From: Macrostomum hystrix
Taxonomy: Eukaryota > Animalia > Platyhelminthes
Assembly (NCBI GenBank): GCA_950097015.1
Contig: CATNEN010000005.1
Coordinates: 3,100,001 to 3,164,000, forward strand
Length of the DNA stretch: 64,000 nt
Reading direction: 5' to 3'
The notes beneath the pieces were generated by a model. The model saw nothing but the letters and a program-made list of their open reading frames with translations, ran no database searches and was not told where the DNA came from. The stretch's first letter is position 1. Every line of letters begins with the position of its first letter. Shown here one piece after another: positions 18,159 to 52,135 of the stretch. The translations under genes and the position numbers were made by a program.

Positions 18159-18159
18159 C

Positions 18160-18172: not shown

Positions 18173-18178
18173 CTCACT

Positions 18179-23403: not shown

Positions 23404-23416
23404 AGGGGGAAAGTAG
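23404..23416 (+). promoter_or_regulatory. Polypurine tract
   Basis: AGGGGGAAAGTAG immediately before the 3' LTR. Confidence 0.85.
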
Positions 23417-32074: not shown

Positions 32075-32106
<32 letters not shown>

Positions 32107-32464
32107 TCCGCCGCCGCCGCCGCCGCCGCCGCCGCCTCCGAGCTCTGGATCGCTGCGTCCGGCGCCAACTAGTTGTGAGTCGCCGGCTCCGACTGCCTCG
32201 CCAACCAGCGGCGGCGGCGGCGAACAGCGCAGCTTCCTGTCCGACATTCGCGCATTCAAAAAGGAGAAGCTGCGTAACGCAGCCACAGACTCCAAGCCCG
32301 AGTCGTCTGCTGTTGCGGCGGCCTCTGGCGGAGGCGCGGCAGGAGGCGGCGCGCAAGACATGCTGAGCGCGTTGAAAGCAGCCATGCGAGACATCAACAA
32401 GGGCGTACAGGGCAACGATTCCGATAGCGAAGACGATGACGACGAAGAGTGGGATGATGATTGA
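30868..32464 (+). CDS. WASL: WASP/N-WASP, join(30868..31164,31244..32464), ~505 aa
   Basis: WH1 domain (LLGPKCVTMATTVAQMY..W..GVLCFVRD..SFFLRFY..FEQEIY..FFHQFEAD), basic region, CRIB IGMPTNFRHVQHVG, polyproline, WH2 RSFLSDIRAFKKEKLR, C helix, acidic DDDEEWDDD; intron cag|gtgagt..cccag| phase 0. Confidence 0.95.
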
Positions 32465-34244
32465 GGATTTCACTGATTGGTTGATCATCAATTCATTCAA
32501 ATCTTCCTGCATGAACTGTGGCTTCAAGGCAGATAAAATGATCACTTGAACTTCTGTTGGCTGTGGTCTTACGTTAAGTCTCACCTGGATGATCCCTTTA
32601 TAATTTTATACCGAAAAATGATTTACAATGATAAACTTTTGATTGCGCTAAACTTTTTGATATGATAATAGGGTATGTTTTTAAACCAGGTTACAACTCA
32701 ATTTTAAAGCCTTTTGTTTGTGGCGGTGTATTGCAAAATATGTGAAAGTAAATACAGAGGATGGATCTATTAGTGATTATACAGAAATTGTTTATTAGTA
32801 AGGTGTGACGTTTTGCCAATAAAAGATTATGACTTACCCTTGGAAGAGTTATATTTGCCAAATCTGACATTGAATTTATGCGCTGTTCTTATTTGTTTTA
32901 AACGCTACTCTGAGTAGAAGTGCTAGTAAAAAGAACCGTAAACAACGATGTCAAACAAAAAATATCGCCAAGTCAATCGCAACTATAAATAGTCGCTCCG
33001 GAATGAAATTTGGCGGGGCGGTCCGGAGTGGCTGGGTTACCCCAATAAACAGCAACAGCAACAACAGCAGCAACAAAGCAGCAGCAGCAACAAACCCAGC
33101 CGCACTAACTTGACCGCTCTTTTGCCACGTAACAACGTATGTCGTAACATATAAAAAAGGTTATTTGCTGTGGTCACCTTTAATGATCATTTTAAATCTA
33201 CGACTACTATTTTTCTATCGGTTTATTTTTCCTGGGTGACAAAGATGCAGTAGTAGATCCTCAAATTTGTCTTAATTAATTTCGTGTTAATGCTACATGT
33301 ACAGCATTAATTTGCGAAAGCGTGTTTTGACTACAAAAAATATATATTTGCAAGAATTTGTGGATATTAGGTTCGAATCCTGACTTTGTCAACAATTTCC
33401 GAAATCGAATTTTAAGCGTCGCTCAGAATAGGGAGGCAATCTGGAGCCAGTAAGTACGTCATGAATACGCGCTGCGTGAGAATCCACGAACTGTTCCACT
33501 GGCTGTGTGAAATACTAAACATTTAGCCATTTTGTCATATGTATTTCACAACATATCGGATGCTTCTTGCTATTAGTAAAGTTCATAAAGTTCATAAAAT
33601 CTAACATTGCTGTTCTCAATAGCCTGAAGGCATGAAAACCAAGTTCAAATCTTCATGTAGGAGGTTTTATAGAATGAATTGATGATAAGATAATTAAAAA
33701 GTTTATAGTTGAAGATATAAAACTAGGATCGATGTTCCTGAAGTCTACTATGAGTAGACTAATAGTAATTAGGGAAACTATAATTATTCGAGTAAATAAT
33801 TAAGTCAGAAAATGTTAATGGCGTTCAAAAAAGTTAAACAATCCGGTACTATTCAGCTACGAGTACTTTTGATAAGAAAAGCAACGCGTTTTGTTTATTT
33901 GCATAATTTTCGTGAATTGAAATATAATCAATAGATCTGTGAGCTGAAGAGGCCTTAGTATTTAGAGATACAGAAAAATGACGCAAGGCAATATAACAAT
34001 ATACATTTTTACAGGACAAAAACTTAATGTAAAAAGGCATTAGTAGAAATATAACATAAGAGTTCTTAAAAGCCACGAAAAAAATTACTTATTAAATTTA
34101 CGATGGCCATTTTGCAACTAATAACACTGAGATTCTACAAGGCCATTTTTAATGAGGAAGGTCAGGCTTGCTTTATTTATTGAGCTTAATTTTATGGTAG
34201 TAGGCCGAAATATAGTTTTTAACGGTATATCTGACTCATTGTGT

Positions 34245-35150
34245 TCATGGGATCACGGCTGGGATTATCCAACTCATTGGGATCGTGGGATTATCCAACT
34301 CATTGGGATCGTGGGATTATCCAACTCATTGGGATCGTGGGATTATCCAACTCATTGGGATCGTGGGATTATCCAACTCATTGGGATCGTGGGATTATCC
34401 AACTCATAGGGATCGTGGGACTATCCAACTCATAGGGATCGTGGGACTATCCAACTCATAGGGATCATGGGATTATCCAACTCATAGGGATCGTGGGATT
34501 ATCCAACCCATTGGGATCGTGGGATTATCCAACTCATTGGATCGTGGGATTATCCAACCCATTGGGATCGTGGGACTATCCAACTCATTGGGATCGTGGG
34601 ATTATCCAACTCATTGGGATCGTGGGATTATCCAACTCATAGGGATCGTGGGACTATCCAACTCATAGGGATCGTGGGACTATCCAACTCATAGGGATCA
34701 TGGGATTATCCAACTCATAGGGATCGTGGGATTATCCAACCCATTGGGATCGTGGGATTATCCAACTCATTGGATCGTGGGATTATCCAACCCATTGGGA
34801 TCGTGGGACTATCCAACTCATTGGGATCGTGGGATTATCCAACTCATTGGGATCGTGGGATTATCCAACCCATTGGGATCGTGGGATTATCCAACTCATT
34901 GGATCGTGGGATTATCCAACCCATTGGGATCGTGGGACTATCCAACTCATTGGGATCGTGGGATTATCCAACTCATTGGGATCGTGGGATTATCCAACTC
35001 ATAGGGATCGTGGGACTATCCAACTCATAGGGATCGTGGGACTATCCAACCCATTGGGATCGTGGGATTATCCAACTCATTGGATCGTGGGATTATCCAA
35101 CCCATTGGATCGTGGGACTATCCAACTCATAGGGATCATGGGATTCAGTG
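34245..35150. repeat. Minisatellite, 25/26-bp unit TTGGGATCGTGGGATTATCCAACTCA
   Basis: Tandem array without unique spacers. Confidence 0.95.
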
Positions 35151-35489
35151 CTGGGATTATTGAACTGATAGGGATAATAGATTCAATGTTGATTGGGATA
35201 AATAGATCTAGTTAAGCGACAATAAAGCAGACAGGTTTTAAATTTCGCATATATTAAAGTTTTATATCAAATTTAAGCGGAGAAAACGCGATATAAAAGA
35301 ATAAAAAAAACTTAATTAAACTTCAATTGTCAATTGACTAACTATAACCTGACCTAGATATAAAAAACAATGCCTATTACTACGAATTAGTAAAGATTCG
35401 TACTTTACGAGACATAACTACGGTACATTGTGTTTGAGTTTAGCTCGTAGAAACTGGTTAGTAAAATAAGGAAATAATTTAATAGAAAG

Positions 35490-36821
35490 TCACCAGGCAG
35501 AATAAGAGAATCCGTCATTGTCGCGGAATACCAGAAAGAAGCCCAGAATGGTTAGAAACATGACCGTATTGCCAGACAGTACTAGCGCGCAGGCGCCCCA
35601 TTTGATAGCCGGATTGCCTATTGGTGTGCGAGCTAGAACAATGGGCAGGCAGTAGGCGGATACAACTAGAGCGGATGTGACAAAGATGGCAGTTTCCCAG
35701 GCAGCGCCAGATGTTGAGTTCGCATCCGAAATTCTCTTAGCTAGCAGGTAGGGCACCGGCGCCAGCAGGTAGAATATTAGCACAAACATTGGCCACCACA
35801 TGCTGCGGGCGGAGACGGTGATGGCTCAGACAGGTGAGGCACATACCGGTTGTTGATGGATCAGACAGGTGAGGCACATACCGGTTGTTGATGGATCAGA
35901 CAGGTTGGGCAGATGCCGGTTGTTGATGGATCAGACAGGTGAGGCACATACCGGTTGTTGATGGATCAGACAGGTGAGGCACATACCGGTTGTTGATGGA
36001 TCAGACAGGTGAGGCACATACCGGTTGTTGATGGATCAGACAGGTGAGGCAGATGCCGGTTGTTGATGGATCAGACAGGTTGGGCAGATGCCGGTTGTTG
36101 ATGGATCAGACAGGTGAGGCACATACCGGTTGTTGATGGATCAGACAGGTGAGGCACATACCGGTTGTTGATGGATCAGACAGGTGAGGCACATACCGGT
36201 TGTTGATGGATCAGACAGGTGAGGCACATACCGGTTGTTGATGGATCAGACAGGTGAGGCAGATGCCGGTTGTTGATGGATCAGACAGGTGAGGCACATA
36301 CCGGTTGTTGATGGATCAGACAGGTTGGGCAGATGCCGGTTGTTGATGGATCAGACAGGTGAGGCACATACCGGTTGTTGATGGATCAGACAGGTGAGGC
36401 ACATACCGGTTGTTGATGGATCAGACAGGTGAGGCACATACCGGTTGTTGATGGATCAGACAGGTGAGGCAGATGCCGGTTGTTGATGGATCAGACAGGT
36501 GAGGCACATACCGGTTGTTGATGGATCAGACAGGTGAGGCACATATCGGTTGTTGATGGATCAGACAGGGGAGGCAGATACCGGTTGTTGATTGATCAGA
36601 AAGCAGACAGAACTTACCCGTACTGTGGCAGAGCGCAGGCCAGCAGTAGGAAGGTGAGGCCGATAGAAGCAGCAAAGGAGAGAAGAATGATTCCTGTAAT
36701 TGAGAAATAAACTAATACGACTAATTAGTGGTATCAAAAAAACAAGGAGAGTCTCGCACAACAAAAATAAGCAATTCAATATTTTTATGTACTTAAACTG
36801 ACCTTTAACTCCGGCACCCAT
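35490..36821 (-). CDS. LEPROTL1: LEPROT/LEPROTL1 (Vps55/endospanin), complement(join(35490..35802,36618..36693,36803..36821)), ~135 aa
   Basis: Exons give MGAGVKG|IILLSFAASIGLTFLLLACALPQYG|MWWPMFVLIFYLLAPVPY..IKWGACALVLSGNTVMF.TILGFFLVF; canonical splice sites with matching phases. Confidence 0.93.
35825..36605. repeat. Minisatellite, 35-bp unit, filling LEPROT intron 2
   Basis: TCAGACAGGTGAGGCACATACCGGTTGTTGATGGA tandem array. Confidence 0.96.
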
Positions 36822-36952
36822 TTTGTTATCGATCGATGTCTTAAGCACTTCTTCAGCTATACTGAAATATAATATATACAGACTATTGGCATTTGCATCA
36901 TTTAATTTTTCGGGGAAAAAAAACTATTTTATAAAAGAAAAATATTAAGCAC

Positions 36953-37420
36953 TGGATTCTTCAGGTAATAGTATGCGGAACTTCAGGGAAGAGCAATAGA
37001 TTCTTCAGGGAATAGCGATAGATTCTTCAGGGAATAGCGATAGATTCTTCGGGGAATAGCAACCGCTTTTTCAGGGAATAGCAATAGATTCTTCGAGGAA
37101 TAGCAACCGCTTTTTCAGGGAATAGCAACCGCTTTTTCAGGGAATAGCAACCGCTTTTTCAGGGAATAGCAACCGCTTTTTCAGGGAATAGCGATAGATT
37201 CTTCGGGGAATAGCAACCGCTTTTTCAGGGAATAGCGATAGATTCTTCGGGGAATAGCAACCGCTTTTTCAGGGAATAGCAATCGCTTCTTCAGGAAAGA
37301 GCAATAGATTTTTCAGAGAATAGCTAGTGATTCTTCAGGGAATAGCTAGCCATTCTTCAGGGAATAGCTACTGATTATTCAGGGAATAGTGGGCGGTTCT
37401 TCGGGGAAAAGCAGGCGACT
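36953..37420. repeat. Degenerate ~22-bp minisatellite (GATTCTTCAGGGAATAGC..); related short copy at ~40520-40740
   Basis: Tandem array; marks the 3' edge of each WASP-like duplication unit. Confidence 0.88.
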
Positions 37421-38046
37421 TTAAAGGGAAGACTTAAACAAGTTCTATATTTTAGAGCTTGGAAATTCTTAGAAAGACAAGGAAAAAAATTATGATGGAT
37501 TAAAGTTGCGCTATAAGGATCTTAAGGTCGAGTGTTTTCAGCATTAGTACTGAATCAAATTTAAAAAAAAATCTTTCCAAATAGAAAAAAACACACAAAA
37601 AGGTGTATATTTTTGATAAAACCTAAATGACGATTTTAAAGACTTTTTAACAAGGTAAGTTTATGCAGCTCGTTGTTATCAGCAAGGAGCAAAAGACTCG
37701 CTGCTTTTAAAAGAAAACAGACACTGCTAGATGTTATCCGATTCAGTTGTTTCGATGGAAATGAAATTAGCAAACAAAATAAAGGAAAGAATAGTAACAA
37801 GGTAAAAATGCACGAGTCTGGAACAAAAAAACTTAAAATGCAGTAGTCAAAACTAAAAAACTTTTTAGGGACGTTCTGCGAATAAATCGAAGGAACGAAA
37901 AATGATATGAGCTATTTTGCATTTTTCGCGAAACTAAATGCTAGGAAATATTCAGGCCTCAATTTTGTTAGTACAACAAAAAATTAAAGCTAAATCTGGC
38001 CGTATCCGGTCGTCAGTTAGCAGACTCTATCATCCAAATTATCATT

Positions 38047-40353
38047 TTAACTGTCCCAGTCCTGTTCGTCCGATTCGTCTAGCTGATTTTCGATTGGCTG
38101 TTTTGATAACATCGTATTTAAAGCCGTATTCAGAGAAGTGAGCCCACTTGGCAATGGGACACTGGGACTTCGGACAGCCGGACTAGCTGAGCTAACGGGT
38201 TCATCCTGGCTTTTAGGTCGAATTCTCTCCATGCGCTGTTTCAATTCATCTTGAAAGCTTCCAGGTGAACTTTTTGAGACGCCTGGACTAGGAGATTGCG
38301 ATCTCGACCCGGGACTCCTGCCAGCTGGAAGTTTTAAACCCGCATTCGGTGGAGGCGGCGGGGGCGGAGGAGGAGGTGGTGGAGCTGGAGGAATAACACC
38401 CTTTACGATTGGAACTTTGGAAACGGATTGCAAACTTTTTGAAGGATTCACACTGGGACTTCGGCTAGACGGACTATCTTCAGCAAAGGATTCATCTGTT
38501 GACGATGGTTCATCTTCCTCACTAGAAGCGACAGCTTGACGAATTTTTTGAAGGCGTTTTCTTAAGTCGTCGTTTATTACTGGAGAACTCGGCGATACGC
38601 CACGCAAATGATTCATCCTGGGGCTTGGGCTAGCCGGACTAGCTGAACTTGTTGGCTTATTATCATCATTAGGTCGAATTCTCTCCATGCGTTGTTTCAA
38701 TTCATCTTGAAAGTTTACTGGTGCACTATTTGAGACACCTGGACTAGGAGATTGCGATCTCGACCCGGGACTCCTGCCAGCGGGAAGTTTTAAACCCGCA
38801 TTCGGTGGAGGCGGCGGCGGCGGAGGAGGAGGAGGTGGTGGAATGGCACATCTTTTCGCGGTGGCTGGACTAGAAGATTGCGATATCGACCCGGGACTTC
38901 TCCCAGCTGGAAGTTTTAGACCCGCAGTCGGCGGAGGAGGACGTGGGGGTGGAGGAGCTGGAGGAATCGCACATTTTTTCGCGGTGGCTTCGGCAGCGGA
39001 CTTCGCACTTATTGCAGAATTAATGCTGGATCTTTGGCCTGGCTGATTAGCTAAAGGAGTACTTGGTGTCGAAGTAGCCAGCGGTGGCGAAGGCAGCCCG
39101 ACTGGATGAATCGGCGACGGTGGCGCTAGGAAGCCTTCTGCGGCAGCAGTCTCGTACAACCGCTTCATGCCGCCGTAGTCATTTATGACTTTTAAAATGT
39201 TCTTAAAGCCATCTTTCGAATATAATGTCCTTTCAACATTGCAACCGTACTTCTCAAGTATGAATCTCAATGCCGGATCTTTTGCTAAGTAATCAGCGTC
39301 TATCATGACATAGACTTGCGAATATTCATTGCCCTTATCCAGGCCATAGCCTAGCTTTCCAACTAACAATCTTAGCGCTGGGTCTTTGGTTATGTCAGCT
39401 TCGTGTATTGCGCCAGATCTTCCAGGTGCTTCGCTGATGCCCATGTGCATGACGTGTCGAAAATCAGTTGGTCCGCTGATCTCTGGTCGGGCCTTTCTCT
39501 TATCTTGCTTTTCCTTTTTATCTCTCTTTTTTGTTGTTCCGGCGCCATCCGCCCCGCCATCTTTGTCATCCTTGCTGTGACTGGGCTTTTTTCGACGAAA
39601 GAATGCTCGGAATCGCTTACCGGGATGTTTATTCTTTTCTGCGTTGGCATCAACGTCTGCTCGCGTCTGCGGTCTGCTATCCGTTGAGCTGCTGCTAGCC
39701 TTATATGTTTTCGACTGCTGAAAAGAGCATTGCACAGAGTCTTGAACAGATGCTGCCGGCGCAAAATAAGATTCAGGTTCCTCTGGTCTGAGAACCAGCA
39801 GGTCAATTTTGGATTGGACAACTTCAGCGAATTCGATCGCTTCCGCGTGACCTATCTCGCTGCAAACAAAACTCAAGCCAATGATCTGTTCATCGGCTTC
39901 AAACTGGTGAAACAGCGGATCTCCTGTATCATACACCATGCCTTGGTAGATCTCTTGCTCAACAATTAGCCGACCCAAGTTAAGGTCGTAAAAGCGTAAG
40001 AAAAAAGTGCGAAAATAGGTATCGCAAATAAAACAAGCAGCGACGGGACTGCAACAGTGCTTGATCCACTTTCCATTGGCAGCGAAATACAACTCAACCA
40101 CCGTTGTGGCTAAACTGTTGCAGCCAGGCTCGAACATGTTAAATAGCACTTCATGCTCATTGTCTGTTAATAGACGACTGCGTCGATTAGTCGTGTCGGA
40201 GTCGGAGTCGGAGTCGGAGTCGGAATCTGAGTCCCGCCTCGCAATCGGCACAATGGAGTTCGACCAGAACTCTATAGGGATCTCTGACTGCTGTGGTGCC
40301 TGTGGACAATGGACAAAATAAGACTTTGAAGTTTTCTTAAACAAGCTCATCAT
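38047..40353 (-). CDS. Divergent intronless WASP-like protein 1 (768 aa)
   Basis: WH1 (SLATTVVELY..W..FFLRFYD..VEQEIY..LFHQFEAD), basic stretch, CRIB ISGPTDFRHVMHMG, polyproline blocks, C-terminal LTSLNTALNTMLSK..DESDEQDWDS. Confidence 0.9.
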   Translation of the reverse strand: MMSLFKKTSKSYFVHCPQAPQQSEIPIEFWSNSIVPIARRDSDSDSDSDSDSDTTNRRSRLLTDNEHEVLFNMFEPGCNSLATTVVELYFAANGKWIKHCCSPVAACFICDTYFRTFFLRFYDLNLGRLIVEQEIYQGMVYDTGDPLFHQFEADEQIIGLSFVCSEIGHAEAIEFAEVVQSKIDLLVLRPEEPESYFAPAASVQDSVQCSFQQSKTYKASSSSTDSRPQTRADVDANAEKNKHPGKRFRAFFRRKKPSHSKDDKDGGADGAGTTKKRDKKEKQDKRKARPEISGPTDFRHVMHMGISEAPGRSGAIHEADITKDPALRLLVGKLGYGLDKGNEYSQVYVMIDADYLAKDPALRFILEKYGCNVERTLYSKDGFKNILKVINDYGGMKRLYETAAAEGFLAPPSPIHPVGLPSPPLATSTPSTPLANQPGQRSSINSAISAKSAAEATAKKCAIPPAPPPPRPPPPTAGLKLPAGRSPGSISQSSSPATAKRCAIPPPPPPPPPPPPPNAGLKLPAGRSPGSRSQSPSPGVSNSAPVNFQDELKQRMERIRPNDDNKPTSSASPASPSPRMNHLRGVSPSSPVINDDLRKRLQKIRQAVASSEEDEPSSTDESFAEDSPSSRSPSVNPSKSLQSVSKVPIVKGVIPPAPPPPPPPPPPPPNAGLKLPAGRSPGSRSQSPSPGVSKSSPGSFQDELKQRMERIRPKSQDEPVSSASPAVRSPSVPLPSGLTSLNTALNTMLSKQPIENQLDESDEQDWDS

Positions 40354-41465
40354 TCAAAGTTCTTTCTTAATTCTAGCCTATTACAGCCAGCTATTAAGCA
40401 GTTGAGAGATGGAAGAGGCACGTAGAAAGATTAGCACACAGCAAATTAGAATAAAGAAGGCAAATAAGAAAACACAACTAGACAGCCAAAAGAAATCAAG
40501 CAAGATGGTGGGCTTGGCAGGGAATAGCAATAACTTCTGCATGGAATAGTTAGCGATATTACAGGGAAAGCGATTGATTCTTCAGGAAATAGCAAGCGAT
40601 TCTTCAGGAAAAAGCGAGTGATTCTTCAGGGAAAAGCGAGTGATTCTTTAGGGAAAAGCGAGAGATTCTTCAGGTAATGGCAATATATTATTTAGGGAAT
40701 AACAGGCGGTTTTTCAGCAAAAAGCAAGCGATTTTTAAGGGAAGAAAGGAAAGCTCCTTGTTTTGAAAACAGAACAAAACTGGTTCCGTAAGGTCGATAT
40801 TTATTAGCATTATTTCGAAATTAAAAAAACGCAAAAATCTTTTTAAAAAGAGAAAAATAAACAAACATTTGTATATTTTCAATACAACTTAAATTACGAT
40901 TATAAAGACTTTTTAACAAGGTTGGTTTATGCAGCTCGTTGTTATCAGCAAGAAGCAAAAGACTCGCTGCTTTTAAATGAAAACAGACACTGCTAGATGT
41001 TATCCGATTCAGTTGTTTCGATGGAAATGAAATTAGCAAACAAATTTTAGGAAAGAAAAGTAAAAACATAAAAATGCAAGAGTCTGAAACAAAAGCTAAA
41101 ATAAATTAGTCAAAACAAAAAGTGTAACTTTTTCATTGCTAAAGACGTTAAAAGGACAAATAAAAGAAATAAAAAAAATAAATTTTGATTTTTTTTAAAC
41201 TAAATGCTAGGAAATATTCGGGCTTCCGTTTTTTGTTAGTACAACATAAAACAAAGACGAATCTGGCCGTATCCGGTCGTCAGTTTGCAGACTCTATCAT
41301 CCAAATTATCAGTTTAACTGTCCCAGTCCTGTTCGTCCGATTCGTCTAGCTGATTTTTATTGGCTGCTTTGAAAACATCGTATTTAAGGCCGAATTCAGA
41401 GAAGTGAGCCCACTTGGCAATGGGACACTGGGACTTCGGACAGCCGGACTAGCTGAGCTAACGGG

Positions 41466-44360
41466 TTAATCCTCGTCTTTAGGTCGAAATCTCTCCATGC
41501 GTTGCTTTAATTCATCTTGAAAGTTTACTGGTGCACTTTTTGAGACGCCTGGACTAGGAGATTGCGATCTCGACCCGGGACTCCTACCAGCTGGAAGTTT
41601 TAAACCCGCATTCGGTGGAGGCGGCGGGGGCGGAGGAGGAGGTGGTGGAGCTGGAGGAATAACACCCTTTACGATTGGAACTTTGGAAAAAGATTGAGCA
41701 TTTGGCAATGGGCTCACACTGGAACTTTGGACAGTCGGACTAGCTGAGCTAACGAGTTCATCCTGACCTTTAGGTCGAATTCTCTCCATCCGTTGTTTCA
41801 ATTCATCTTGAAAGTTTACTGGTGCACTTTTTGAGACGCCTGGACTAGGAGATTGCGATCTCGACCCGGGACTCCTGCCAGCTGGAAGTTTTAAACCCGC
41901 ATTCGGTGGAGGCGGCGGGGGCGGAGGAGGAGGTGGTGGAGCTGGAGGAAAAACACCCTTTACGATTGGAACTTTGGAAAAAGATTGAGCATTTGGCAAT
42001 GGGCTCACACTGGAACTTTGGACAGTCGGACTCGCTGAGCTAACGGGTTCATCCTGGCCTTTAGGTCGAATTCTCTCCATGCGTTGTTTCAATTCATCTT
42101 GAAAGTTTACTGGTGCACTTTTAGAGACGCCTGGACTAGGAGATTGCGATCTCGACCCGGGACTCCTGCCAGCTGGAAGTTTTAAACCCGCATTCGGTGG
42201 AGGCGGCGGTGGAGGAGGAGGTGGTGGAGCTGGAGGAATAACACCCTTTACGATTGGAACTTTGGAAAAAGATTGAGCATTTGGCAATGGGCTCACACTG
42301 GAACTTTGGACAGTCGGACTCGCTGAGCTAACGGGTTCATCCTGGCCTTTAGGTCGAATTCTCTCCATGCGTTGTTTCAATTCATCTTGAAAGTTTACTG
42401 GTGCACTTTTTGAGACGCCTGGACTAGGAGATTGCGATCTCGACCCGGGACTCCTGCCAGCTGGAAGTTTTAAACCCGCATTCGGCGGAGGCGGCGGTGG
42501 AGGAGGAGGTGGTGGAGCTGGAGGAATAACACCCTTTACGATTGGAACTTTGGAAAAAGATTGAGCATTTGGCAATGGGCTCACACTGGAACTTTGGACA
42601 GTCGGACTAGCTGAGCTAACGCCTTCATCCTCGTCTTTAGGTCGAATTCTCTCCATGCGTTGTTTCAATTCATCTTGAAAGTTTACTGGTGCACTTTTTG
42701 AGACGCCTGGACTAGGAGATTGCGATCTCGACCCGGGACTCCTGCCAGCTGGAAGTTTTAAACCCGCATTCGGTGGAGGAGGAGGAGGGGGTGGAGGAGC
42801 TGGGGGAATCGCACATTTTTTCGCAGTGGCTTCGGCAGCGGACTTCGCACTTAGCGCAGAATTTATGCCGGGTCCTTGGCCTGGCGGATTAGCTAAAGGA
42901 GTACTTGGTATATACTCGACGCTAGATTCATCTTGAAAGTATTCTGCTGAATCATTCAAGCCAATTGGAGAAAAAGATTTCTCCACCGGACTCACTCTAC
43001 TCTGCTTCTGGCTGTCGACATTGATGAGCATAATAGGTGTTCTTGGTTCAGATGAATCCATAACTTTTCTCGGTGTCGAAGTAGCCAGCGGTGGCGAAGG
43101 CAGCCCGACTGGATGAATCGGCGACGGTGGCGCTAGGAAGCCTTCTGCGGCAGCAGTCTCGTACAACCGCTTCATGCCGCCGTAGGCATTTATGACTTTT
43201 GAAATGTTCTTAAAGCCATCTTTCGAATATAATGTCCTTTCAACATTGCAACCGTACTTCTCAAGTATGAATCTCAATGCCGGATCTTTTGCTAAGTAAT
43301 CAGCGTCTATCATGACATAGCCTTGCGTATATTCATTGCCCCTATCCAGGCCATAGCCTAGCTTTCCAACTAACAATCTTAGCGCTGGGTCTTTGGTTAT
43401 GTCAGCTTCGTGTATTGCGCCAGATCTTCCAGGTGCTTCGCTGATGCCCATGTGCATGACGTGTCGAAAATCAGTTGGTCCGCTGATCTCTGGTCGGGCC
43501 TTTCTCTTATCTTGCTTTTCCTTTTTATCTCTCTTTTTTGTTGTTCCGGCGCCATCCGCCCCGCCATCTTTGTCATCCTTGCTGTGACTGGGCTTTTTTC
43601 GACGAAAGAATGCTCGGAATCGCTTACCGGGATGTTTATTCTTTTCTGCGTTGGCATCAACGTCTGCTCGCGTCTGCGGTCTGCTATCCGTTGAGCTGCT
43701 GCTAGCCTTATATGTTTTCGACTGCTGAAAAGAGCATTGCACAGAGTCTTGAACAGATGCTGCCGGCGCAAAATAAGATTCAGGTTCCTCTGGTCTGAGA
43801 ACCAGCAGGTCAATTTTGGATTGGACAACTTCAGCGAATTCGATCGCTTCCGCGTGACCTATCTCGCTGCAAACAAAACTCAAGCCAATGATCTGTTCAT
43901 CGGCTTCAAACTGGTGAAACAGCGGATCTCCTGTATCATACACCATGCCTTGGTAGATCTCTTGCTCAACAATTAGCCGACCCAAGTTAAGGTCGTAAAA
44001 GCGTAAGAAAAAAGTGCGAAAATAGGTATCGCAAATAAAACAAGCAGCGACGGGACTGCAACAGTGCTTGATCCACTTTCCATTGGCAGCGAAATACAAC
44101 TCAACCACCGTTGTGGCTAAACTGTTGCAGCCAGGCTCGAACATGTTAAATAGCACTTCATGCTCATTGTCTGTTAATAGACGACTGTGTCGAATAGTCG
44201 TGTCGGAGTCGGAGTCGGAGTCGGAGTCGGAATCTGAGTCCCGCCTCGCAATCGGCACAATGGAGTTCGACCAGAACTCTATAGGGATCTCTGACTGCTG
44301 TGGTGCCTGTGGACAATGGACAAAATAAGACTTTGAAGTTTTCTTAAACAAGCTCATCAT
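41466..44360 (-). CDS. Divergent intronless WASP-like protein 2 (964 aa) with five ~96-aa repeats, truncated before the CA tail
   Basis: First ~430 aa almost identical to 38047-40353 (offset 4007 bp); five copies of the polyPro..FQDELKQRMERIRP module; GAA>TAA stop at 41466-68. Confidence 0.85.
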   Translation of the reverse strand: MMSLFKKTSKSYFVHCPQAPQQSEIPIEFWSNSIVPIARRDSDSDSDSDSDSDTTIRHSRLLTDNEHEVLFNMFEPGCNSLATTVVELYFAANGKWIKHCCSPVAACFICDTYFRTFFLRFYDLNLGRLIVEQEIYQGMVYDTGDPLFHQFEADEQIIGLSFVCSEIGHAEAIEFAEVVQSKIDLLVLRPEEPESYFAPAASVQDSVQCSFQQSKTYKASSSSTDSRPQTRADVDANAEKNKHPGKRFRAFFRRKKPSHSKDDKDGGADGAGTTKKRDKKEKQDKRKARPEISGPTDFRHVMHMGISEAPGRSGAIHEADITKDPALRLLVGKLGYGLDRGNEYTQGYVMIDADYLAKDPALRFILEKYGCNVERTLYSKDGFKNISKVINAYGGMKRLYETAAAEGFLAPPSPIHPVGLPSPPLATSTPRKVMDSSEPRTPIMLINVDSQKQSRVSPVEKSFSPIGLNDSAEYFQDESSVEYIPSTPLANPPGQGPGINSALSAKSAAEATAKKCAIPPAPPPPPPPPPNAGLKLPAGRSPGSRSQSPSPGVSKSAPVNFQDELKQRMERIRPKDEDEGVSSASPTVQSSSVSPLPNAQSFSKVPIVKGVIPPAPPPPPPPPPPPNAGLKLPAGRSPGSRSQSPSPGVSKSAPVNFQDELKQRMERIRPKGQDEPVSSASPTVQSSSVSPLPNAQSFSKVPIVKGVIPPAPPPPPPPPPPPNAGLKLPAGRSPGSRSQSPSPGVSKSAPVNFQDELKQRMERIRPKGQDEPVSSASPTVQSSSVSPLPNAQSFSKVPIVKGVFPPAPPPPPPPPPPPPNAGLKLPAGRSPGSRSQSPSPGVSKSAPVNFQDELKQRMERIRPKGQDELVSSASPTVQSSSVSPLPNAQSFSKVPIVKGVIPPAPPPPPPPPPPPPNAGLKLPAGRSPGSRSQSPSPGVSKSAPVNFQDELKQRMERFRPKDED

Positions 44361-45435
44361 TCAAAGTTCTTTCTTAATTCTAGCCTATTACAGACAGCTA
44401 TTAAGCAGTTGAGAGATGGAAGAGGCACGTAGAAAGATTAGCACACAGCAAATCAGAATCAAGTAACCAGACAGTGCTTAACAAATTGAAGCAAGTTGGG
44501 CTTAGCAGACAGAATGGGCGAGTCAGAGACAGTGAAAGAAATGCTAAAGCGGAACAATATAAAATAATAAGAGGAAACAAGACATGCTTTTTAATCATAT
44601 AAAAGATATAATAGGCTTGTATAATTTTTGTTTATCCTGAAAATTGATCATGCTTATCGCATTAAAAACTTGCTTGAGCAAAGCGCACTTCTAATAAAAG
44701 TTAATAAAAAGAAGACACTTAAGCAACGAATTGTTTTTTTTAAACGAACAACTCGAAAAAAAACTTCATTACGTAACTCCAAAACAATCCTTTAAGGTCC
44801 TAATAGACAAAGGATAATCTGTCAAGGGATAATAACAAATACTCGTATATATTGCACAATAGTTAAATTATTATGGTCAATCGTTGGGTCCAGGAATTTT
44901 TAGCTGGGCACTTAAAAGTTAAAATCTGAAACATAAAATATGGAGCCCAGCTGATTGGCAGTCAGATGTCACGGCTAATACCTCATAATGACATGCACTC
45001 ATGCTATATGGCTATAAAGGGCTATTTTAGCTCCTCAAAACCGCCATGAACTAACAGTGTAGAAAGATGCAATGATAAACCGATCGACAAGATTACGATG
45101 ACAGGGGTCAGTTGAGGGTGGACTCTGGGGTAGGAAAGTAGATGTACATTTAACCAATGTACATAGCCCTCATCCTCATCCTTATCTAGTTTCATAGGGC
45201 GCCGAACTTGACAAACCGGTGCTAGTTTAAAAAACAATTAGTCAATTTCGAATTTCAAATCAAGCCAAAACTAATAATCATCCATCCAATTACTCAATAC
45301 GGTTGATTAATTAATTTTTTTCAACACAAAACGATGACAGCGACATGGCTAATAAAGACTTTGTTGTCACTTGAATTTTAACTCGCTAACAAGTCTTGCG
45401 CAACCAAAAAAGTGTTAACTCGAATGTTGTAGCAA

Positions 45436-46407
45436 TTAAAACTTGCTGCCCATAACAGCCAGAAAGAATTTCGGCACCTTGATAAAACCCGGCACAAAAC
45501 GTGCCAGAGTAATTAAGCCAGCCTGCTCTAGAAGGTATCGCACGGAGCGCAAGCTCTGCACATGACGATCACCGGCGTCGCGCAGACCGTATTCGTCGCC
45601 AAGATCGCCAGTGAGCAGTACTCGACCAGTTTTGTCATTCAACAGACTTTTGCTAGGAGAGCTAGCCAGGGCGGCGATGGCTTTACCGGCGAATTCCACA
45701 GTTTCGCCCTGTTCAAACATTCGACGCTGCTTAGGCGGCATTCGGGCCAGATTGGTCATGATCTCTTCGGTCTGTACAGCGCCAGGCCAGACGCTGACAG
45801 CGGCAACGCCGCGCGATTTTAATTCGACAGCCATATCGCCAGCCATTCGATCTAGAGCGGCTTTGCCAACACCGTAGGGAACGTTAAATAAGTAGCGCAG
45901 ACCGCCAGGAGACGACAGGTTAACAATCAGGCCACTGCCGCGCTCGATCATCATGCGAGCAGCGTACACGGAGCAGATGTAGTGATTGCGCAAGCCAACA
46001 TTATTCACTTCGTCCCAGGCGGAGACGTCCAATTCCCAGAACTTCTTTCCCATAGATTCTGAGATTAAGCGGACAGCGGAATAGGCGTTGTTAACGAGCA
46101 CATCTAGGCGGCCATTCTGCTCTCGTTGGATCTGCTCAAATAGTCGTTTAACATCGTCGTCCTTCTTGTGATCGCACTGTACTCCGATAGCCCGACCGCC
46201 GCGTGCTTCAATCTCGGCTATGGTCTCTTTGATGCTGCCGCCGACTCCACCGCTACCCGGCGTTGGCTCCATTGTCCGACCAGTGATGTACACGGTGGCT
46301 CCGGCTTCGCCTAGCTGCAGGGCGATGCCCTTGCCGATACCGCGCGTGGCTCCGGTGACCAGGCAGATAAGGCCTGTCAGGGGAAGTTGCTTGGCAGCTA
46401 CCTTAGC
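45436..46407 (-). CDS. DHRS1: DHRS1-like short-chain dehydrogenase (paralog A); no ATG in the exon
   Basis: Open frame from the acceptor at 46407: AKVAAKQLPLTGLICLVTGATRGIGKGIALQLGEAGATVYITGR..LDVLVNNA..FNVPYGVGK..SVWPGAVQTE; start codon unresolved. Confidence 0.9.
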   Translation of the reverse strand, partial: AKVAAKQLPLTGLICLVTGATRGIGKGIALQLGEAGATVYITGRTMEPTPGSGGVGGSIKETIAEIEARGGRAIGVQCDHKKDDDVKRLFEQIQREQNGRLDVLVNNAYSAVRLISESMGKKFWELDVSAWDEVNNVGLRNHYICSVYAARMMIERGSGLIVNLSSPGGLRYLFNVPYGVGKAALDRMAGDMAVELKSRGVAAVSVWPGAVQTEEIMTNLARMPPKQRRMFEQGETVEFAGKAIAALASSPSKSLLNDKTGRVLLTGDLGDEYGLRDAGDRHVQSLRSVRYLLEQAGLITLARFVPGFIKVPKFFLAVMGSKF

Positions 46408-46494
46408 CTGGAATAGGCGATGTGTTCAATATTGTGAAGTAGGATTCTTCGGATTGCTTTGTCAGTTTCAAGGGCATTCGAATATTGGGCAACA

Positions 46495-46832
46495 ACGGGA
46501 TTAACCAGCTTCTAGGGCATTGGAATACTGGGAAACAATGGGATTAACTAGTTTACAGGGCATTGGAATATTGAGAAATAATGAGATCACCAGTTCACAG
46601 GACAGTGGCATATTGGGAAACAATGAGATCACCAGTTTACAGGACATTGGCATGTTGAGAAACAATGACATCACCAGTTTACAGGACAGTGGCATATTGG
46701 GAAATAATGAGATCACCAGTTTACAGGACATTGGCATGTTGAGAAACAATGACATCACCAGTTTACAGGACAGTGGCATATTGGGAAATAATGAGATCAC
46801 CAGTTTACAGGACAGTGGCATGTTGGGAAAAC
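46495..46832. repeat. Minisatellite, 42-bp unit
   Basis: TTGGGAAACAATGAGATCACCAGTTTACAGGACAGTGGCATA-type tandem array. Confidence 0.9.
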
Positions 46833-47220
46833 TAAGCTAACCTCAGTTTCTACGGGATCGGAATTTCGAGAAATAGTTTCAAGTCCTAATTCGATTTGGT
46901 AGACCACACTTATATAGGATTATAAAGCAGAAAGCAAAAAAGTAACAAAAACAACAAGAAACTACACTTTGACTTGTAAACAACTCGTCTTTAGTAGAAA
47001 TCAAAACAGAAATAGTTTCAGTTCTCAGCGTCAAGTTATTATGGTAGGAAAAAGGTAAATTATGTCAAATGATTAACTGCAAACAAGAACATAGGCACAC
47101 AGTTTAAAGTCAATAGAACTCAAAACAATCAGTTTATTACCGGACTATTAAATGGCAAAAATTATCATAAGATTCATCTTTATCTTCATGAAAATATGCA
47201 TTAAATAAATTCTAGTATTA

Positions 47221-48854
47221 TTAAAACTTGCTAGTAGCAGCAGCAATCACCCAGAATGGCACCCGAATGCAGGCCGGCACTAACTTAGCCAATCCACTAT
47301 AGCCGTAGAATTCCAATAGGAAGCTAGCAGATCGCATGCTAACAATGGACCGGCCGCCAACATCAGTGAAGCCGTATTCGTTGGCTAATTCCGCTGTGAG
47401 CAGGATTCGACCAGTCTTATTGGCTAGCAATTGATTGATGGGCTCTGAGGCTAGAGCCGACACAGCCTTGCCAACAAATTCGGTTGTTTCTCCGCGACGA
47501 AACATTTCTAGCATGCGACGATCGACCGGGCTGATCACCTGGCCAGAATCCGCGTCCGCGGCGGCCACCACGGCTAGAGCCTCTTCCGTCTGGACGGCGC
47601 CTGGCCAGAGACTAATAACGGCAACACCGCGCGACCTTAGCTCTACCTGTATGAGCGATCAGGGGATTGGCATGGGATTGGCAGTGTAGGATCAGGGGAT
47701 TGACATGGGATTGGCAGTGTAGGATCAGGGGATTGGCATGGGATTGGCAGTGTAGGATCAGGGGGTTGACATGGGATTAACAGTGTAGGATCAGGGGATT
47801 GGCATGGGATTGGCAGTGTAGGATCAGGGGATTGGCATGGGATTTGCAGTGTAGGATCAGGGGATTGACATGGGATTGGCAGTGTAGGATCAGGGGGTTG
47901 ACATGGGATTAACAGTGTAGGATCAGGGGATTGGCATGGGATTGGCAGTGTAGGATCAGGGATTGACATGGGATTTGCAGTGTAGGATCTGGGGATTGAC
48001 ATGAGATTTGCAGTGTAGGATCAGGGGGTTGGCAGTGAAGGATCAGAGGATTGGTTGTAGGATCAGGGGATTGGCTGTGTAGGATCAGGGGATTGACAGT
48101 GTAGGATCAGAGGATTTGGTGTAGGATCAGGGGATTGGCAGTGTAGGATCAGGGGATTAAGGTGTAGGATTAGGGGATTGGGGTGTAGGATTAGGGGATT
48201 GTCAGTTGTAGGATCAGGGGATTGTAAGTGATTAGGAATCTTGTTCATCATGTTCCAGTATTAAGTAATGCTCACCGCCATATCAGCAGCCATACGATCG
48301 AAAGCAGCTTTGCCGACGCCGTACGGCACGTTGAACAGGTAGCTGAGACCACCGCCCGAAGACACGTTGATAATAAGGCCGCTGCCACGCGGCACCATCA
48401 TGCGAGCAGCGTACACCGAGCAGATGTAGTGATTGCGCAATCCGACACTGTTCACTTCGTCCCAAACATCTGGCGACATCTCCCAGAACATTTTACCACG
48501 ATTCTCAGCAATAACCCGAGCAGCAGAGAATGCGTTGTTAACGAGCACATCTAGGCGGCCATTCTGCTCTCGTTGGATCTGCTCAAATAGTCGTTTAACA
48601 TCGTCGTCCTTCTTGTGATCGCACTGTACTCCGATAGCCCGACCGCCGCGTGCTTCAATCTCGGCTATGGTCTCTTTGATGCTGCCGCCGACTGAAATTG
48701 AGTCGCCAGACGCCGACGCACCTTTACCTGCTGGTTCAAGAGTTCTGCCGGTGATGTATACCGTTGCACCGGCTTCACCTAGTTTGATGGCGATGCCCTT
48801 GCCGATGCCACGTGTAGCTCCAGTGACTAGGCAGACTTTTCCAGATAGAGACAT
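47221..48854 (-). CDS. DHRS1: DHRS1-like short-chain dehydrogenase (paralog B), complement(join(47221..47646,48276..48854)), ~334 aa
   Basis: MSLSGKVCLVTGATRGIGKG..NNA..YGVGK..DMA|VELRSRG..LWPG; donor gcg|gtgagc, acceptor catacag|, phase 0. Confidence 0.92.
47657..48225. repeat. Minisatellite, 33-bp unit, filling the DHRS1-B intron
   Basis: CAGGGGATTGGCATGGGATTGGCAGTGTAGGAT tandem array. Confidence 0.93.
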
Positions 48855-48929
48855 TGCAGTCCAACTGATTGGCTGCAAATTAGATAAGAATTGAAGGTCA
48901 TTCAGGGGCGAGAACGATTCTCACAATGG

Positions 48930-50690
48930 CTTGAAAGGCGATTTTCCTAGGGAGTTGGAGGACGATTCTCATAGCGAGTTGGAGGACGATTCTCATAGGG
49001 AGTTGGAGGACGATTCTCATAGGGAGTTGGAGGACGATTCTCATAGGGAGTTGGGGGACGAATCTCATAAGGAGTTGGAGGACGAATCTCATAGGGAGTT
49101 GGAGGACGATTCTCATAGGGAGTTGGAGGACGATTCTCATAGCGAGTTGGAGGACGAATCTCATAGCGAGTTGGAAGACGATTCTCATAGGGAGTTGGAG
49201 GACGATTCTCATAGGGAGTTGGAGGACGAATCTCATAGGGAGTTGAAGGACGATTCTCTTAGGGAGTTGGAGGACGATTATCTTAGGGAGTTCGAGGACG
49301 AATCTCATAGGGAGTTGGAGGACGAATCTCATAGGGAGTTGGAAGACGAATCTCATAGGGAGTTGGAGGACGAATCTCATAGGGAGTTGGAGGACGATTA
49401 TCTTAGGGAGTTGAAGGACGATTCTCACAGTGGCTAGAAAGACGATTCTCTTACGGAGTTGAAGGACGATTATCATAGGGAGTTCGAGGACGAATCTCAT
49501 AGGGAGTTGGAGGACGATTCTCTTAGGGAGTTGGAGGACGATTATCTTAGGGAGTTGGAGGACGATTCTCACAGTGGCTAGAAAGACGATTCTCTTACGG
49601 AGTTGAAGGACGATTATCATAGGGAGTTCGAGGACGAATCTCATAGGGAGTTGGAGGACGAATCTCATAGGGAGCTGGAAGACGAATCTCATAGGGAGTT
49701 GGAGGACGATTCTCATAGGGAGTTGGAGGACGAATCTCATAGGGAGTTGGAGGACGAATCTCATAGGGAGTTGGAGGACGAATCTCATAGGGAGTTGGAA
49801 GACGAATCTCATAGGGAGTTGGAGGACGAATCTCATAGGGAGTTGGAGGAGGATTCTCATAGCGAGTTGGAGGACAATTCTCATAGCGAGTTGGAGGACG
49901 AATCTCATAGGGAGTTGAAGGACGATTCTCATAGCGAGTTGGAGGACGATTCTCATAGCGAGTTGGAGGACGATTCTCATAGGGAGTTGGAGGAGGATTC
50001 TCATAGCGAGTTGGAGCACAATTCTCATAGCGAGTTGGAGGACGATTCTCATAGCGAGTTGAAGGACGATTCTCATAGCGAGTTGGAGGACGATTCTCAT
50101 AGCGAGTTGGAGGACGATTCTCATAGGGAGTTAAAGGACGATTCTCATAGCGAGTTGGAGGACGATTCTCATAGCGAGTTGGAGGACGATTCTCATAGGG
50201 AGTTGAAGGACGATTCTCTTAGGGAGTTGGAGGACGATTATCTTAGGGAGTTCGAGGACGAATCTCATAGGGAGTTGGAGGACGAATCTCATAGGGAGTT
50301 GGAGGACGATTATCTTAGGGAGTTGAAGGACGATTCTCACAGTGGCTAGAAAGACGATTCTCTTACGGAGTTGAAGGACGATTATCATAGGGAGTTCGAG
50401 GACGAATCTCATAGGGAGTTGGAGGACGAATCTCATAGGGAGTTGGAGGACGATTCTCATAGGGAGTTGGAGGACGAATCTCATAGGGAGTTGGAAGACG
50501 AATCTCATAGGGAGTTGGAGGACGAATCTCATAGGGAGTTCGAGGACGAATCTCATAGGGAGTTGGAGGACGAATCTCATAGGGAGTTGGAGGACGAATC
50601 TCATAGCGAGTTGGAGGACGAATCTCATAGCGAGTTGGAGGACGAATCTCATAGGGAGTTGGAGGACGAATCTAATTGGTAGTTGGAGGA
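48930..50690. repeat. Minisatellite, 24-bp unit GATTCTCATAGGGAGTTGGAGGAC
   Basis: ~70 copies with block-wise re-duplicated variants. Confidence 0.96.
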
Positions 50691-52135
50691 CTTTGGGGAG
50701 CAAAATAAGATAACGAAAAACCACCAGACCAGTGAAGGAATAAACCGCACCAAAATCACCGACAAATCCAATATAATTTTACAAAGCGAACATGAACAAG
50801 TGAAAACAACAACAAAGAAAGCTAGAGGCATAACTAAATCTTATTGTCAACATTCTGTGTCGATCTAGCACGAGTGAGAAGTTCGCACATATTAAAACAC
50901 GGAGCCTAAACTGATTATTAACACGAAAGATAATGCTCTACTTATTCTCTACTATAAACATTCTCACAACGCTACTTGCTAGTAGCATAATCGTCGTATT
51001 TGCAAGCAATATAAGTCGTTTAGAGCAAAAAGGCAGAGAGACGTTGCATGTATTGTTAGTTCTTGTACTATGCATTTTCTAAAGATAGCATATAATAAAC
51101 AGAACTGAATATTTAGCAGGTAATCAACTTTTAGCGCGTAAATATTAAACTCTAGAATAGACATTTGATGAGGTTATCACAAAGTTTAACACTTTTAACA
51201 ACCCACTCTGATAATTTAACAGTTATTGGCACAGATTGCACAGTGCAGTATTACGTAAGTTAGTTTTAGACTTTAGGTTAAAAATATAGTGACAGTTGGT
51301 CAAGATTGTATGATTAATAATAACCCGCTAAAAATAGGGATGTTTCTTTGGGTGATTCCAGTTGGAATCTGCGGTGTTTCCAGAAAAAGAAGCAGCCGAA
51401 CGCTGGAAACATACCAATCGGATGATTCCATGCTTAAAATCTACCCAACTGGGCGTTTTCTCGGTGCTTCTTGGTGGCGAAATGGAATCACCCAAAGAAT
51501 CCTCCAGTTCGGAAGATTCCATGCTCAGAAACCGCCGAGGAATCGCCCGTAAATAATTCTCTGGTTGTCCCATGGGCCACTGGTTCGGGTGATTCTTCGG
51601 CGGTTTCCGCACAATTTACGGTTACATCGGCTGCTTCCTGGGTGGTTTCTTTAACTCTTGCGAGATAGGGGGGATTTTAGTAGATTCCACTCCTATTTTG
51701 CACTAAAAACCCGCCGAATTTTTTACAGGGAATCTCTCATTTGACGTGTCAGAGAGACATTAATTATTAAACAAAAGTTTAGATACAATCACGACTAGAG
51801 AAGGCGTAACAGATGAAGGGTATAACACTTGAAAATATATAGGCAATAATTTAAAGTGTAGTAATTAGTAACTAACAGAATAAAACTAATGATCGCTTTT
51901 GTTAAGAGACAAGAGAAGTATTAAAACTAATTCGGAACCAACTAAAACAAACTTGTAATAATAATTTAGAGAACTTTTGAAACTGTGTACAGAAACAAAA
52001 AAATTAAAACCAGAATTATAATTAAACTAGATATTTTAACGATTTCGATAAAATAAACCAGATTGTATTTTATTAACAAAAACAGGATGTTAGGATTTCA
52101 ATACAAAGCAAAATAAATTAATAGAATCTTAGAAA

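Follow-up and report, generated by a model that had tools for sequence, protein, structure and literature searches.

In a WASP protein, contact with Arp2/3 is made solely by the central (C) and acidic (A) elements, and engineered N-WASP from which VCA or the C element has been removed behaves as a dominant negative. Ena/VASP proteins are laid out with an EVH1 domain, a proline-rich region, a G-actin-binding WH2-like motif, an F-actin-binding element and a tetramerisation element. Within the WASP family itself, Drosophila WHAMY is a duplicate of the wasp gene that does not activate Arp2/3 and works beside an intact WASP (PMC5095904, PMC8834112), and the proline-rich region of yeast Las17 has been suggested to work on actin independently of Arp2/3 (PMC5095904). 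Here we describe WASP-like 2, a gene of the flatworm Macrostomum hystrix that lies in a window of 64,000 nt, the whole stretch of DNA that was analysed, and compare it with these systems.

Results

WASP-like 2 is an uninterrupted, intronless reading frame of 964 codons plus a TAA stop on the minus strand (41466–44360; ORF list, Pfam WH1 and PBD matches), and its product runs from a WH1 domain through a basic region and a CRIB motif to five units of 94–97 residues in tandem. Pfam identifies the WH1 domain, a WASP/N-WASP family feature, at residues 77–182 (43815–44132; PF00568, E 2.3e-19, 69.8 bits), in agreement with the initial annotation of the head. The CRIB named there is supported in its core, ISGPTDFRHVMHMG (residues 291–307, 43440–43490), which follows a lysine/arginine-rich basic stretch and in which the motif ISxPxxFxHxxH(M)G is legible; over just the first 17 of the 59 Pfam positions, the PBD score of 19.6 bits falls a little below the 21.3 cut-off, and the canonical WASP copy scores 22.5 bits. 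A GBD segment is duplicated in the WASP-like genes. Alignment of the paralogous proteins shows that a 55-residue segment (42909–43073) is private to WASP-like 2 and missing from WASP-like 1.

The neighbouring WASP-like 1 (38047–40353, minus strand; ORF list and alignment) is likewise intronless, and encodes a protein of 768 aa, in which two FQDEL modules are accompanied by an internal remnant resembling C-A and by a live C-A tail whose last residues are DWDS. A canonical WASP/N-WASP orthologue lies 9 kb from WASP-like 2 on the plus strand (30868–32464). It has a single intron, of 78 nt, its V-C-A tail closes with EEWDDD, and its M. lignano orthologue is P0006. In M. lignano the locus syntenic with the WASP-like pair (SYVN1 – SDR – WASP-like – Vps55) holds a single gene with its C-A tail intact, compared with the tandem pair in the window, which points to an origin by WASP-family duplication and makes both the duplication and the tail loss lineage-specific. 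By this comparison the C-A tail is the ancestral state, kept by WASP-like 1 and by the M. lignano orthologue. Among 1.84 billion representatives the closest relatives are canonical N-WASPs, with no more than 43% identity. Word-index protein searches with WASP-like 1, its tail and the head found nothing closer than distant canonical N-WASPs, where they matched at all; look-ups of the exact proteins returned no record, an ESM Atlas feature search with one unit gave no usable match, and the genome-paper supplements contain no WASP/WH1 entry. Separately, an Rfam match to a nematode sRNA family hinted at a nematode origin, which was rejected because neither an SL1 model nor an SL1 pattern gave a match and because the closest homologues and the gene order are those of Macrostomum.

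Tandem Repeats Finder reports one array in WASP-like 2 (41414–42807; period 288, 4.8 copies, 96% matches, score 2502), which parses into unit 1 (residues 519–612, 42525–42806), unit 2 (613–708, 42237–42524), unit 3 (709–804, 41949–42236) and unit 4 (805–901, 41658–41948) of 94, 96, 96 and 97 residues, all on the minus strand, followed by unit 5 (902–964, 41469–41657), which the stop ends after 63 residues. Five units had been described previously as near-identical and 288–291 bp long; the number holds, but unit 1 measures 282 bp. The units open with PPA and then P9, P11, P11, P12 and P12, in order, such that the proline-rich region characteristic of WASP/N-WASP is present as five tracts of 9–12 prolines. 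As also described, every unit carries in addition the helix FQDELKQRMERIRP, with an I to F change giving FRP in the last (overall FQDELKQRMER(I/F)RP). The helices begin at residues 561, 657, 753, 850 and 947 and are thus 96 residues apart, with 82 residues between them, polyproline tract included. This spacing does not fit a Spire-type nucleator, which had been one suggestion for the protein and which we disfavour.

Across the five units the module core has accumulated five synonymous changes and one non-synonymous change (p = 0.0036), and the 14-residue helix is unchanged in six of the seven copies over both WASP-like genes, despite four silent changes. The module core is under protein-level constraint. 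The 5:1 synonymous excess and the near-invariant helix indicate that the repeats were selected and may still be, and the signal may predate the TAA.

In WASP-like 1 the FQDEL helix immediately precedes the linker-C-A segment, and so occupies the V position. The canonical SFLSDIRAFKKEKLRNA aligns with it, as does DLLSEIRKGKQLRPV of P0005, a WH2 verified by Pfam (IRPK compared with LRPV), with the spacing from helix to LKKT-type motif one residue longer than usual; an LKKT-type motif behind an amphipathic helix, positioned at V before C-A, is a feature of WH2. Neither Pfam WH2 (PF02205, up to E 10) nor a home-made profile built from 109 WH2s taken from search matches finds a match in WASP-like 2. 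The Pfam model works on P0005 (4.6e-9), and since both profiles also miss the V motif of the canonical copy they are uninformative in this lineage. Prediction of a module–actin complex gave an ipSAE of 0.40, compared with 0.01 for the best control, which is weak support: a score of 0.60 or less is wrong more often than it is right, and peptides fall outside the calibration, in which 51 of 78 solved complexes and two of 108 mismatched pairs attained the ipSAE mark. Contact agreement between runs was at least 57% and partner pLDDT at least 49. The actin used was its large exon alone (334 aa, exons not joined), and no intronless actin gene was found in the genome. The earlier assignment of the helix as a WH2 is thus borne out by its position and by the LRPV-type alignment but not by any profile, and of the two checks proposed against G-actin the fold prediction points weakly in its favour and the HMM gave no match. 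We regard the WH2 reading as plausible, if unproven.

The reading frame of WASP-like 2 ends at TAA (41466–41468), where WASP-like 1 and units 1–4 have GAA, as seen both in the alignment of the paralogue 3′ ends and in the comparison of units, confirming that a GAA>TAA change cuts off C-A. Beyond it the severed linker-C-A tail extends to the ancestral stop at 41314–41316 (tail 41314–41465), and differs from the live tail by four substitutions and one net -1 change. The initial annotation called the latter a 1-nt deletion; one base is indeed lost on balance, but the lesion, at ~41358, replaces CG with A and is a deletion plus a substitution. The same change makes an AATAAA hexamer (41356–41361, minus strand), 108 nt past the TAA and lacking in WASP-like 1. 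The 3′ ends of the two genes share 96% column identity overall, and the dead tail is ~97% identical to the live one, compared with 86% for the 3′ flank. A C-like stretch is located beyond the TAA, as is the acidic tail with its conserved tryptophan, DESDEQDWDS, which is also frameshifted. A home-made C profile picks up the tail of M. lignano (p 0.0005) and, in WASP-like 1, the internal remnant (p 0.011), and has no match in the WASP-like 2 units. Both lesions are confined to the final 5% of the gene, the 2.9-kb ORF itself carrying no lesion, with a chance of ~0.05 for the second lesion. The truncation is real in the sequence, and the proposed loss of C and A is upheld by two independent lesions. 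Disabling lesions relative to both paralogue and orthologue, a mark of young pseudogenes, are present, and the loss of the tail looks recent when set against the age of the duplication.

The assembly was made from PacBio CLR reads and polished with Arrow and Pilon (PMC10468722), and in a tandem duplicate with internal repeats polishing may introduce errors, such that the true sequence might be GAA with an in-frame tail, or the repeat number might differ. We consider this quite improbable. There are two separate lesions, neither of them a homopolymer-length error, and the TAA occurs at only one position, with no template in the neighbour or in the other units, so that mis-mapping of paralogous reads during polishing cannot explain it. 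The units each carry private variants, and the array spans only 1.4 kb. Two studies of this organism supply other runs (27–50 million letters, library type unspecified) in which copy-specific words are also found and 69–72% of the sampled 31-mers of 41250–43150 are present; only 33% of these 31-mers are common to WASP-like 1.

That splicing or recoding of the mRNA rescues the tail, with the protein keeping its acidic, tryptophan-bearing end, is very improbable. Unit 4 alone has a silent change that creates a donor-like AAG|GTCAGG at 41767; spliced to an acceptor, TTTTCAAAG, whose end is at 41367, this donor would place unit 4 in frame with ...NQLDESDEQDWDS, but the C helix would be skipped even so, and both WASP-like paralogues are otherwise intronless. 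For an intron spanning the stop, 158 GT..AG pairs keep the frame to the old stop, and none of the 158 has consensus signals. Read-through of the TAA was rejected because the frameshift follows the stop and is met before the acidic part.

The heads of WASP-like 1 and WASP-like 2 are 98% identical, and since they are nearly identical while the 3′ flank is only 86% so, they are being homogenised by gene conversion. Within the first 429 codons there are seven non-synonymous and no synonymous differences, a ratio that does not depart significantly from neutrality (p ~0.13) and that positive selection would fit too. Five of the seven changes are in the GBD region, and at the two sites that can be polarised with M. 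lignano (56 and 340) the derived state is in WASP-like 2. The head of WASP-like 2 shows no sign of purifying selection and may be drifting.

These comparisons bear on whether WASP-like 2 is a natural dominant negative or buffer, which would sequester Cdc42, WIP-type and SH3 activators, or actin monomers, with no Arp2/3 output, and so tune the activity of WASP-like 1 and canonical WASP. All of the input modules are retained and the output module is gone, and heads as similar as these should compete for the same partners. However, the changes concentrated in the GBD region would erode partner sharing, and sequestration gives no reason for multiplying and conserving the helix module; we judge it improbable.

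Discussion

We propose that WASP-like 2 is an intronless tandem duplicate of a fast-evolving, Macrostomum-lineage WASP-family gene, in which unequal crossing-over would have expanded a module of polyproline tract and WH2-derived helix to five copies at a time when the module was under protein-level constraint. The later GAA>TAA and net -1 changes removed the central and acidic-tryptophan elements. With no intron in the gene, the early stop should not set off splice-dependent mRNA decay, and we infer that a 964-residue WH1-basic-CRIB-5x(P+V) protein is probably still made. As predicted from its parts, this protein could retain WASP-like recruitment and bind profilin or SH3 partners, and it would probably bind G-actin; without C and A, it would be unable to switch on Arp2/3.

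The reading we favour, to which we give a probability of about 45%, is that WASP-like 2 is a recently disabled and redundant copy under relaxed constraint, and not a long-selected new architecture. The loss would have been tolerated because WASP-like 1 and canonical WASP are intact, and the recent truncation together with a head that lacks purifying selection makes a tolerated loss at least as likely as a selected function. Counting against this reading are the selection on the module core, which may persist, the clustering of both lesions at the 3′ end, the AATAAA that the frameshifting change creates, and a 7:0 ratio that does not differ significantly from the neutral one.

A selected function would be that of an actin assembly factor without CA, a WHAMY- or VASP-like distributive polymerase beside the Arp2/3-activating WASP-like 1, in which the head brings the protein to membranes, the proline tracts capture profilin-actin and the helix hands the monomer to barbed ends. 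Purifying selection on the module core is consistent with this, as are tracts of P9–P12, within the likely profilin-binding range (PMC5095904), the sufficiency of a surface-clustered WASP-family PRD and WH2 for Arp2/3-free polymerase activity (PMC5753033), the WHAMY precedent (PMC5095904, PMC8834112), the module–actin prediction (weakly), and an intact ORF with a new AATAAA after the stop. Set against these are the youth of the truncation, the head free of purifying selection, a module signal possibly older than the stop, a helix recognised as WH2 by none of the profiles used, and the lack of an identified F-actin-binding or oligomerisation element, and on balance we find a polymerase role somewhat unlikely.

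If WASP-like 2 is functional, it would be the second independent WASP duplicate, after Drosophila WHAMY, to have become an Arp2/3-independent actin factor, and a natural construct, CA-less and with five PRD-WH2 modules, on which the distributive-polymerase model could be tested; were it a cis-multivalent polymerase, the polymerase function of the WASP family would be naturally split from the nucleation-promoting one. If it is a recent loss, the locus is an ordinary but instructive snapshot, in which gene conversion keeps the heads near-identical and repeat expansion and truncation drive the output ends apart. In both cases, Macrostomum has a fast-evolving second WASP lineage alongside the canonical gene.

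With canonical WASP/N-WASP, WASP-like 2 shares the WH1 domain, basic region, CRIB core, proline-rich region and a helix at the V position; it differs in having no in-frame C or A and no more than 43% identity, and the WASP-like genes are also intronless, with a duplicated GBD segment and, in WASP-like 2, a fivefold P+V module. Las17 is alike in that a WASP-family proline-rich region is proposed to act on actin independently of Arp2/3, but its tracts are short (P5) and come with arginine pairs, and its WCA is kept, whereas WASP-like 2 has P9–P12 tracts, no RR pairs and has lost CA. At least three putative monomer-binding helices in tandem, with Arp2/3 not required, recall Spire, Cobl, JMY and VopL/VopF, although Spire uses short linkers that align monomers, unlike the 82 residues seen here. 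The likeness to Ena/VASP is one of layout, with an EVH1/WH1-fold head, profilin-type tracts and a putative WH2-like helix, and extends to valency, which is four per VASP tetramer and five in cis in WASP-like 2; the head, however, groups with WASP WH1 by sequence and is accompanied by a CRIB, and an F-actin-binding or coiled-coil element was not found in WASP-like 2. The architecture had not been recognised in the initial annotation, and WHAMY is a precedent for it (PMC5095904, PMC8834112). The flatworm gene is of independent origin, from an already divergent WASP-like lineage, and differs from WHAMY also in its five tandem P+V modules and in a clean, seemingly recent nonsense-plus-frameshift loss. 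Both are nonetheless lineage-specific WASP duplicates that keep regulatory and proline/WH2 parts, and WASP-like 2, like WHAMY, is predicted to have lost Arp2/3 activation.

Architecture of WASP-like 2

The tandem array at 41414-42807 (period 288, 4.8 copies, 96% matches, score 2502) falls within the uninterrupted 964-codon open reading frame of WASP-like 2 (41466-44360, minus strand). In the head of the predicted protein, a WH1 domain at residues 77-182 (Pfam, E 2.3e-19) is accompanied by a lysine/arginine-rich stretch and then the CRIB core ISGPTDFRHVMHMG; the Pfam CRIB/PBD model is matched over its first 17 positions only, at 19.6 bits (cut-off 21.3). The last 446 residues consist of four units of 94, 96, 96 and 97 residues and a fifth that is cut short. 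All five have the order PPA and 9-12 prolines, then NAGLKLPAGRSPGSRSQSPSPGVSKSAPVN, then FQDELKQRMERIRP, with an FRP variant of the FQDELKQRMERIRP ending in the last unit. Array, reading frame and unit parsing agree on the five polyproline-helix units described in the initial annotation.

Two lesions bar the C-A tail

WASP-like 1 (38047-40353, 768 aa), on the same strand 1.1 kb downstream, ends in a linker and C-A, the central helix and acidic tail engaging Arp2/3 (...DESDEQDWDS). Alignment of the two copies places TAA (41466-41468) in WASP-like 2 against GAA in WASP-like 1, confirming an earlier proposal that a GAA>TAA change cuts off C-A. A 1-nt deletion had also been reported in the dead tail; there is indeed a net -1 change at about 41358, although its exact form is CG replaced by A, and it shifts the acidic tail out of the reading frame. 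C-A is therefore barred by two independent lesions. Read-through of the TAA was considered as a rescue of the tail and rejected, as the frameshift is reached before the acidic part. The frameshifting CG>A also makes an AATAAA (41356-41361, minus strand) 108 nt past the stop, the sole canonical one within 600 nt of it; none is present within 550 nt of the WASP-like 1 stop.

The truncation could be an assembly artefact, but this is highly unlikely. The published assembly (~220 Mb, 42 contigs, inbred line SR1) was built from PacBio reads with Illumina polishing (PMC10468722), and since TAA has no template in WASP-like 1 or in the other four WASP-like 2 units, mis-mapped paralogue reads cannot be its source. 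Rescue of the tail by splicing is extremely improbable: a GGC>GGT change at 41767 (minus strand), silent and found only in unit 4, creates a donor-like AAG|GTCAGG; were this spliced to a TTTTCAAAG acceptor lying 401 nt further along (41367, minus strand), unit 4 would be fused in frame with the acidic tail DWDS, but both signals are weak and the pairing is probably a coincidence.

Origin and history of the tandem pair

When 1.84 billion representatives were searched exhaustively with HMMER, no relative exceeded 43% identity. The top two matches are M. lignano proteins, one (P0006) the orthologue of canonical WASP (30868-32464) and the other (P0007) of the WASP-like lineage. The order synoviolin, short-chain dehydrogenase (SDR), WASP-like, Vps55 is the same in the window (35490-53674, minus strand) and on M. 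lignano contig L027, where a single WASP-like gene stands in place of the tandem pair. Between its WH1 exon and its basic-CRIB exon, that gene retains an intron that both M. hystrix copies have lost. It codes for four to five polyproline repeats, and its C-A tail, with SEWDD as the last residues, is intact. This comparison indicates that C-A is ancestral and that tandem duplication, intron loss and C-A loss all occurred on the M. hystrix lineage.

Several other features were observed in the window. A satellite-like tandem repeat between Vps55 and canonical WASP (34150-35215, plus strand) has several open frames with repeated ...GSWDYPTHWDRGIIQLIGIVGLSNS... ORFs. Although this is a flatworm genome, 33014-33120 (plus strand) matches the Rfam family 'nematode sRNA ceN72-3_ceN74-2' at 48.8 bits (gathering cut-off 38); the small RNA class may be conserved more widely than the family name implies. 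A block of ~60% GC in a ~43% GC genome (~18100-23420, plus strand) encodes the aspartyl protease, reverse transcriptase and integrase of a Ty3/gypsy-like LTR retroelement. The spacer between the WASP-like copies (40557-40743) is filled by a 22/44/66-bp tandem repeat (73-76% matches).

Homology between the copies extends from about 100 nt before the ATG to several hundred nt beyond the stop. Their first 429 codons differ at only 7 sites, none synonymous, whereas the 3' flanks are only 86% identical (367/427), with indels, a pattern pointing to homogenisation of the heads by gene conversion and to a duplication much older than head similarity implies. Five of the 7 differences fall in the GBD region holding an internally duplicated post-CRIB 'KDPALR(L/F)..' segment (43200-43345, minus strand, in WASP-like 2; 39190-39340 in WASP-like 1), which is single in the M. 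lignano orthologue. The cut-off tail differs from the live WASP-like 1 tail by 4 substitutions and an indel in 152 nt (~97% identity), far below the flank divergence, and thus appears to have been free of constraint, or unconverted, only briefly.

WASP-like 1 keeps the older layout of polyproline (P) and WH2-position (V) elements: P-V, a C-A-like remnant, then P-V-C-A. The remnant (38464-38577, minus strand; LQKIRQAVASSEEDE / INDDLRKRLQKIRQAVASSEEDE...FAED) lies between its two P-V modules and is matched by a home-made C-region profile (empirical p 0.011). In the WASP-like 2 unit, within which no C-like element was found, the beginning of the post-V linker is fused to the stretch ahead of the last proline tract, a junction that unequal crossing-over would produce. 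Among units 2-4 the differences amount to 1-5 nt in 195, and the edge variant KDEDE is common to units 1 and 5.

Module constraint and probable WH2 ancestry

Over a 44-codon core, the five WASP-like 2 units show 5 synonymous versus 1 non-synonymous change (binomial p 0.0036, with a synonymous fraction of sites of 0.237), and six of the seven helix copies in the two WASP-like genes have the same 14 residues despite four silent changes. Together these argue for past protein-level selection on the module, which may predate the stop. The hinge after the helix carries 2 synonymous and 4 non-synonymous changes.

The WH2 assignment proposed earlier agrees with position and alignment. Linker and C-A follow the helix in WASP-like 1, as they follow SFLSDIRAFKKEKLRNA in canonical WASP, and the helix can be aligned to DLLSEIRKGKQLRPV, a WH2 verified by Pfam in Logan N-WASP P0005 (IRPK versus LRPV). 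WH2 profiles do not match the helix; the same profiles also miss the V of canonical WASP. WH2 ancestry is likely. Folding a 40-residue module with own-genome actin (the large exon only, 334 aa, exons not joined) gave an ipSAE of 0.40 against 0.01 for the best control, graded 'weak support' in a range (at or below 0.60) where most passes prove wrong unless binding is likely beforehand, on a calibration that excludes peptides. Across runs, contact agreement was at least 57% and partner pLDDT at least 49. Present-day actin binding is plausible.

Status of the truncated gene

We favour a tolerated recent loss of C-A, at a probability of roughly 0.45, because the truncation is young, the head changes are all non-synonymous (both polarisable ones derived in WASP-like 2), WASP-like 1 and canonical WASP are intact in the same 14 kb, and in the sequenced line, a highly inbred selfer, a redundant gene's loss-of-output allele could easily become fixed (PMC10468722). 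Several observations speak instead for a living gene: the reading frame is intact and the module core constrained, both lesions are confined to the last 5% of the gene, the AATAAA past the stop is new, and splice-dependent mRNA decay would not be expected as there is no intron. Copy-specific 31-mers are also present in same-organism data: eight runs from two studies contain 69-72% of sampled 31-mers of 41250-43150, and only 33% of sampled WASP-like 2 31-mers are common to WASP-like 1. With 27-50 million letters apiece, the eight runs appear transcriptome-sized rather than genome-sized. A living WASP-like 2 might be a selected Arp2/3-independent actin assembly factor, a real but lesser possibility, or a selected decoy, which is unlikely.

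Comparison with known systems

In WASP-family proteins, proline-rich elements and WH2s that are clustered jointly act as a distributive polymerase without Arp2/3 (PMC5753033), and this would be the favoured mechanism for the WASP-like 2 modules if the gene is functional. A Spire-like nucleator had also been suggested, but the 82-residue spacing between helices disfavours Spire-type nucleation. The architecture, initially regarded as unrecognised, has a precedent in Drosophila WHAMY, a WASP duplicate with regulatory and proline/WH2 parts that is unable to activate Arp2/3 (PMC5095904, PMC8834112); WASP-like 2 likewise appears to keep these parts and is without C-A. What is new in WASP-like 2 is an independent flatworm origin, five identical P-V modules in cis, and a clean nonsense truncation beside an intact sister gene.
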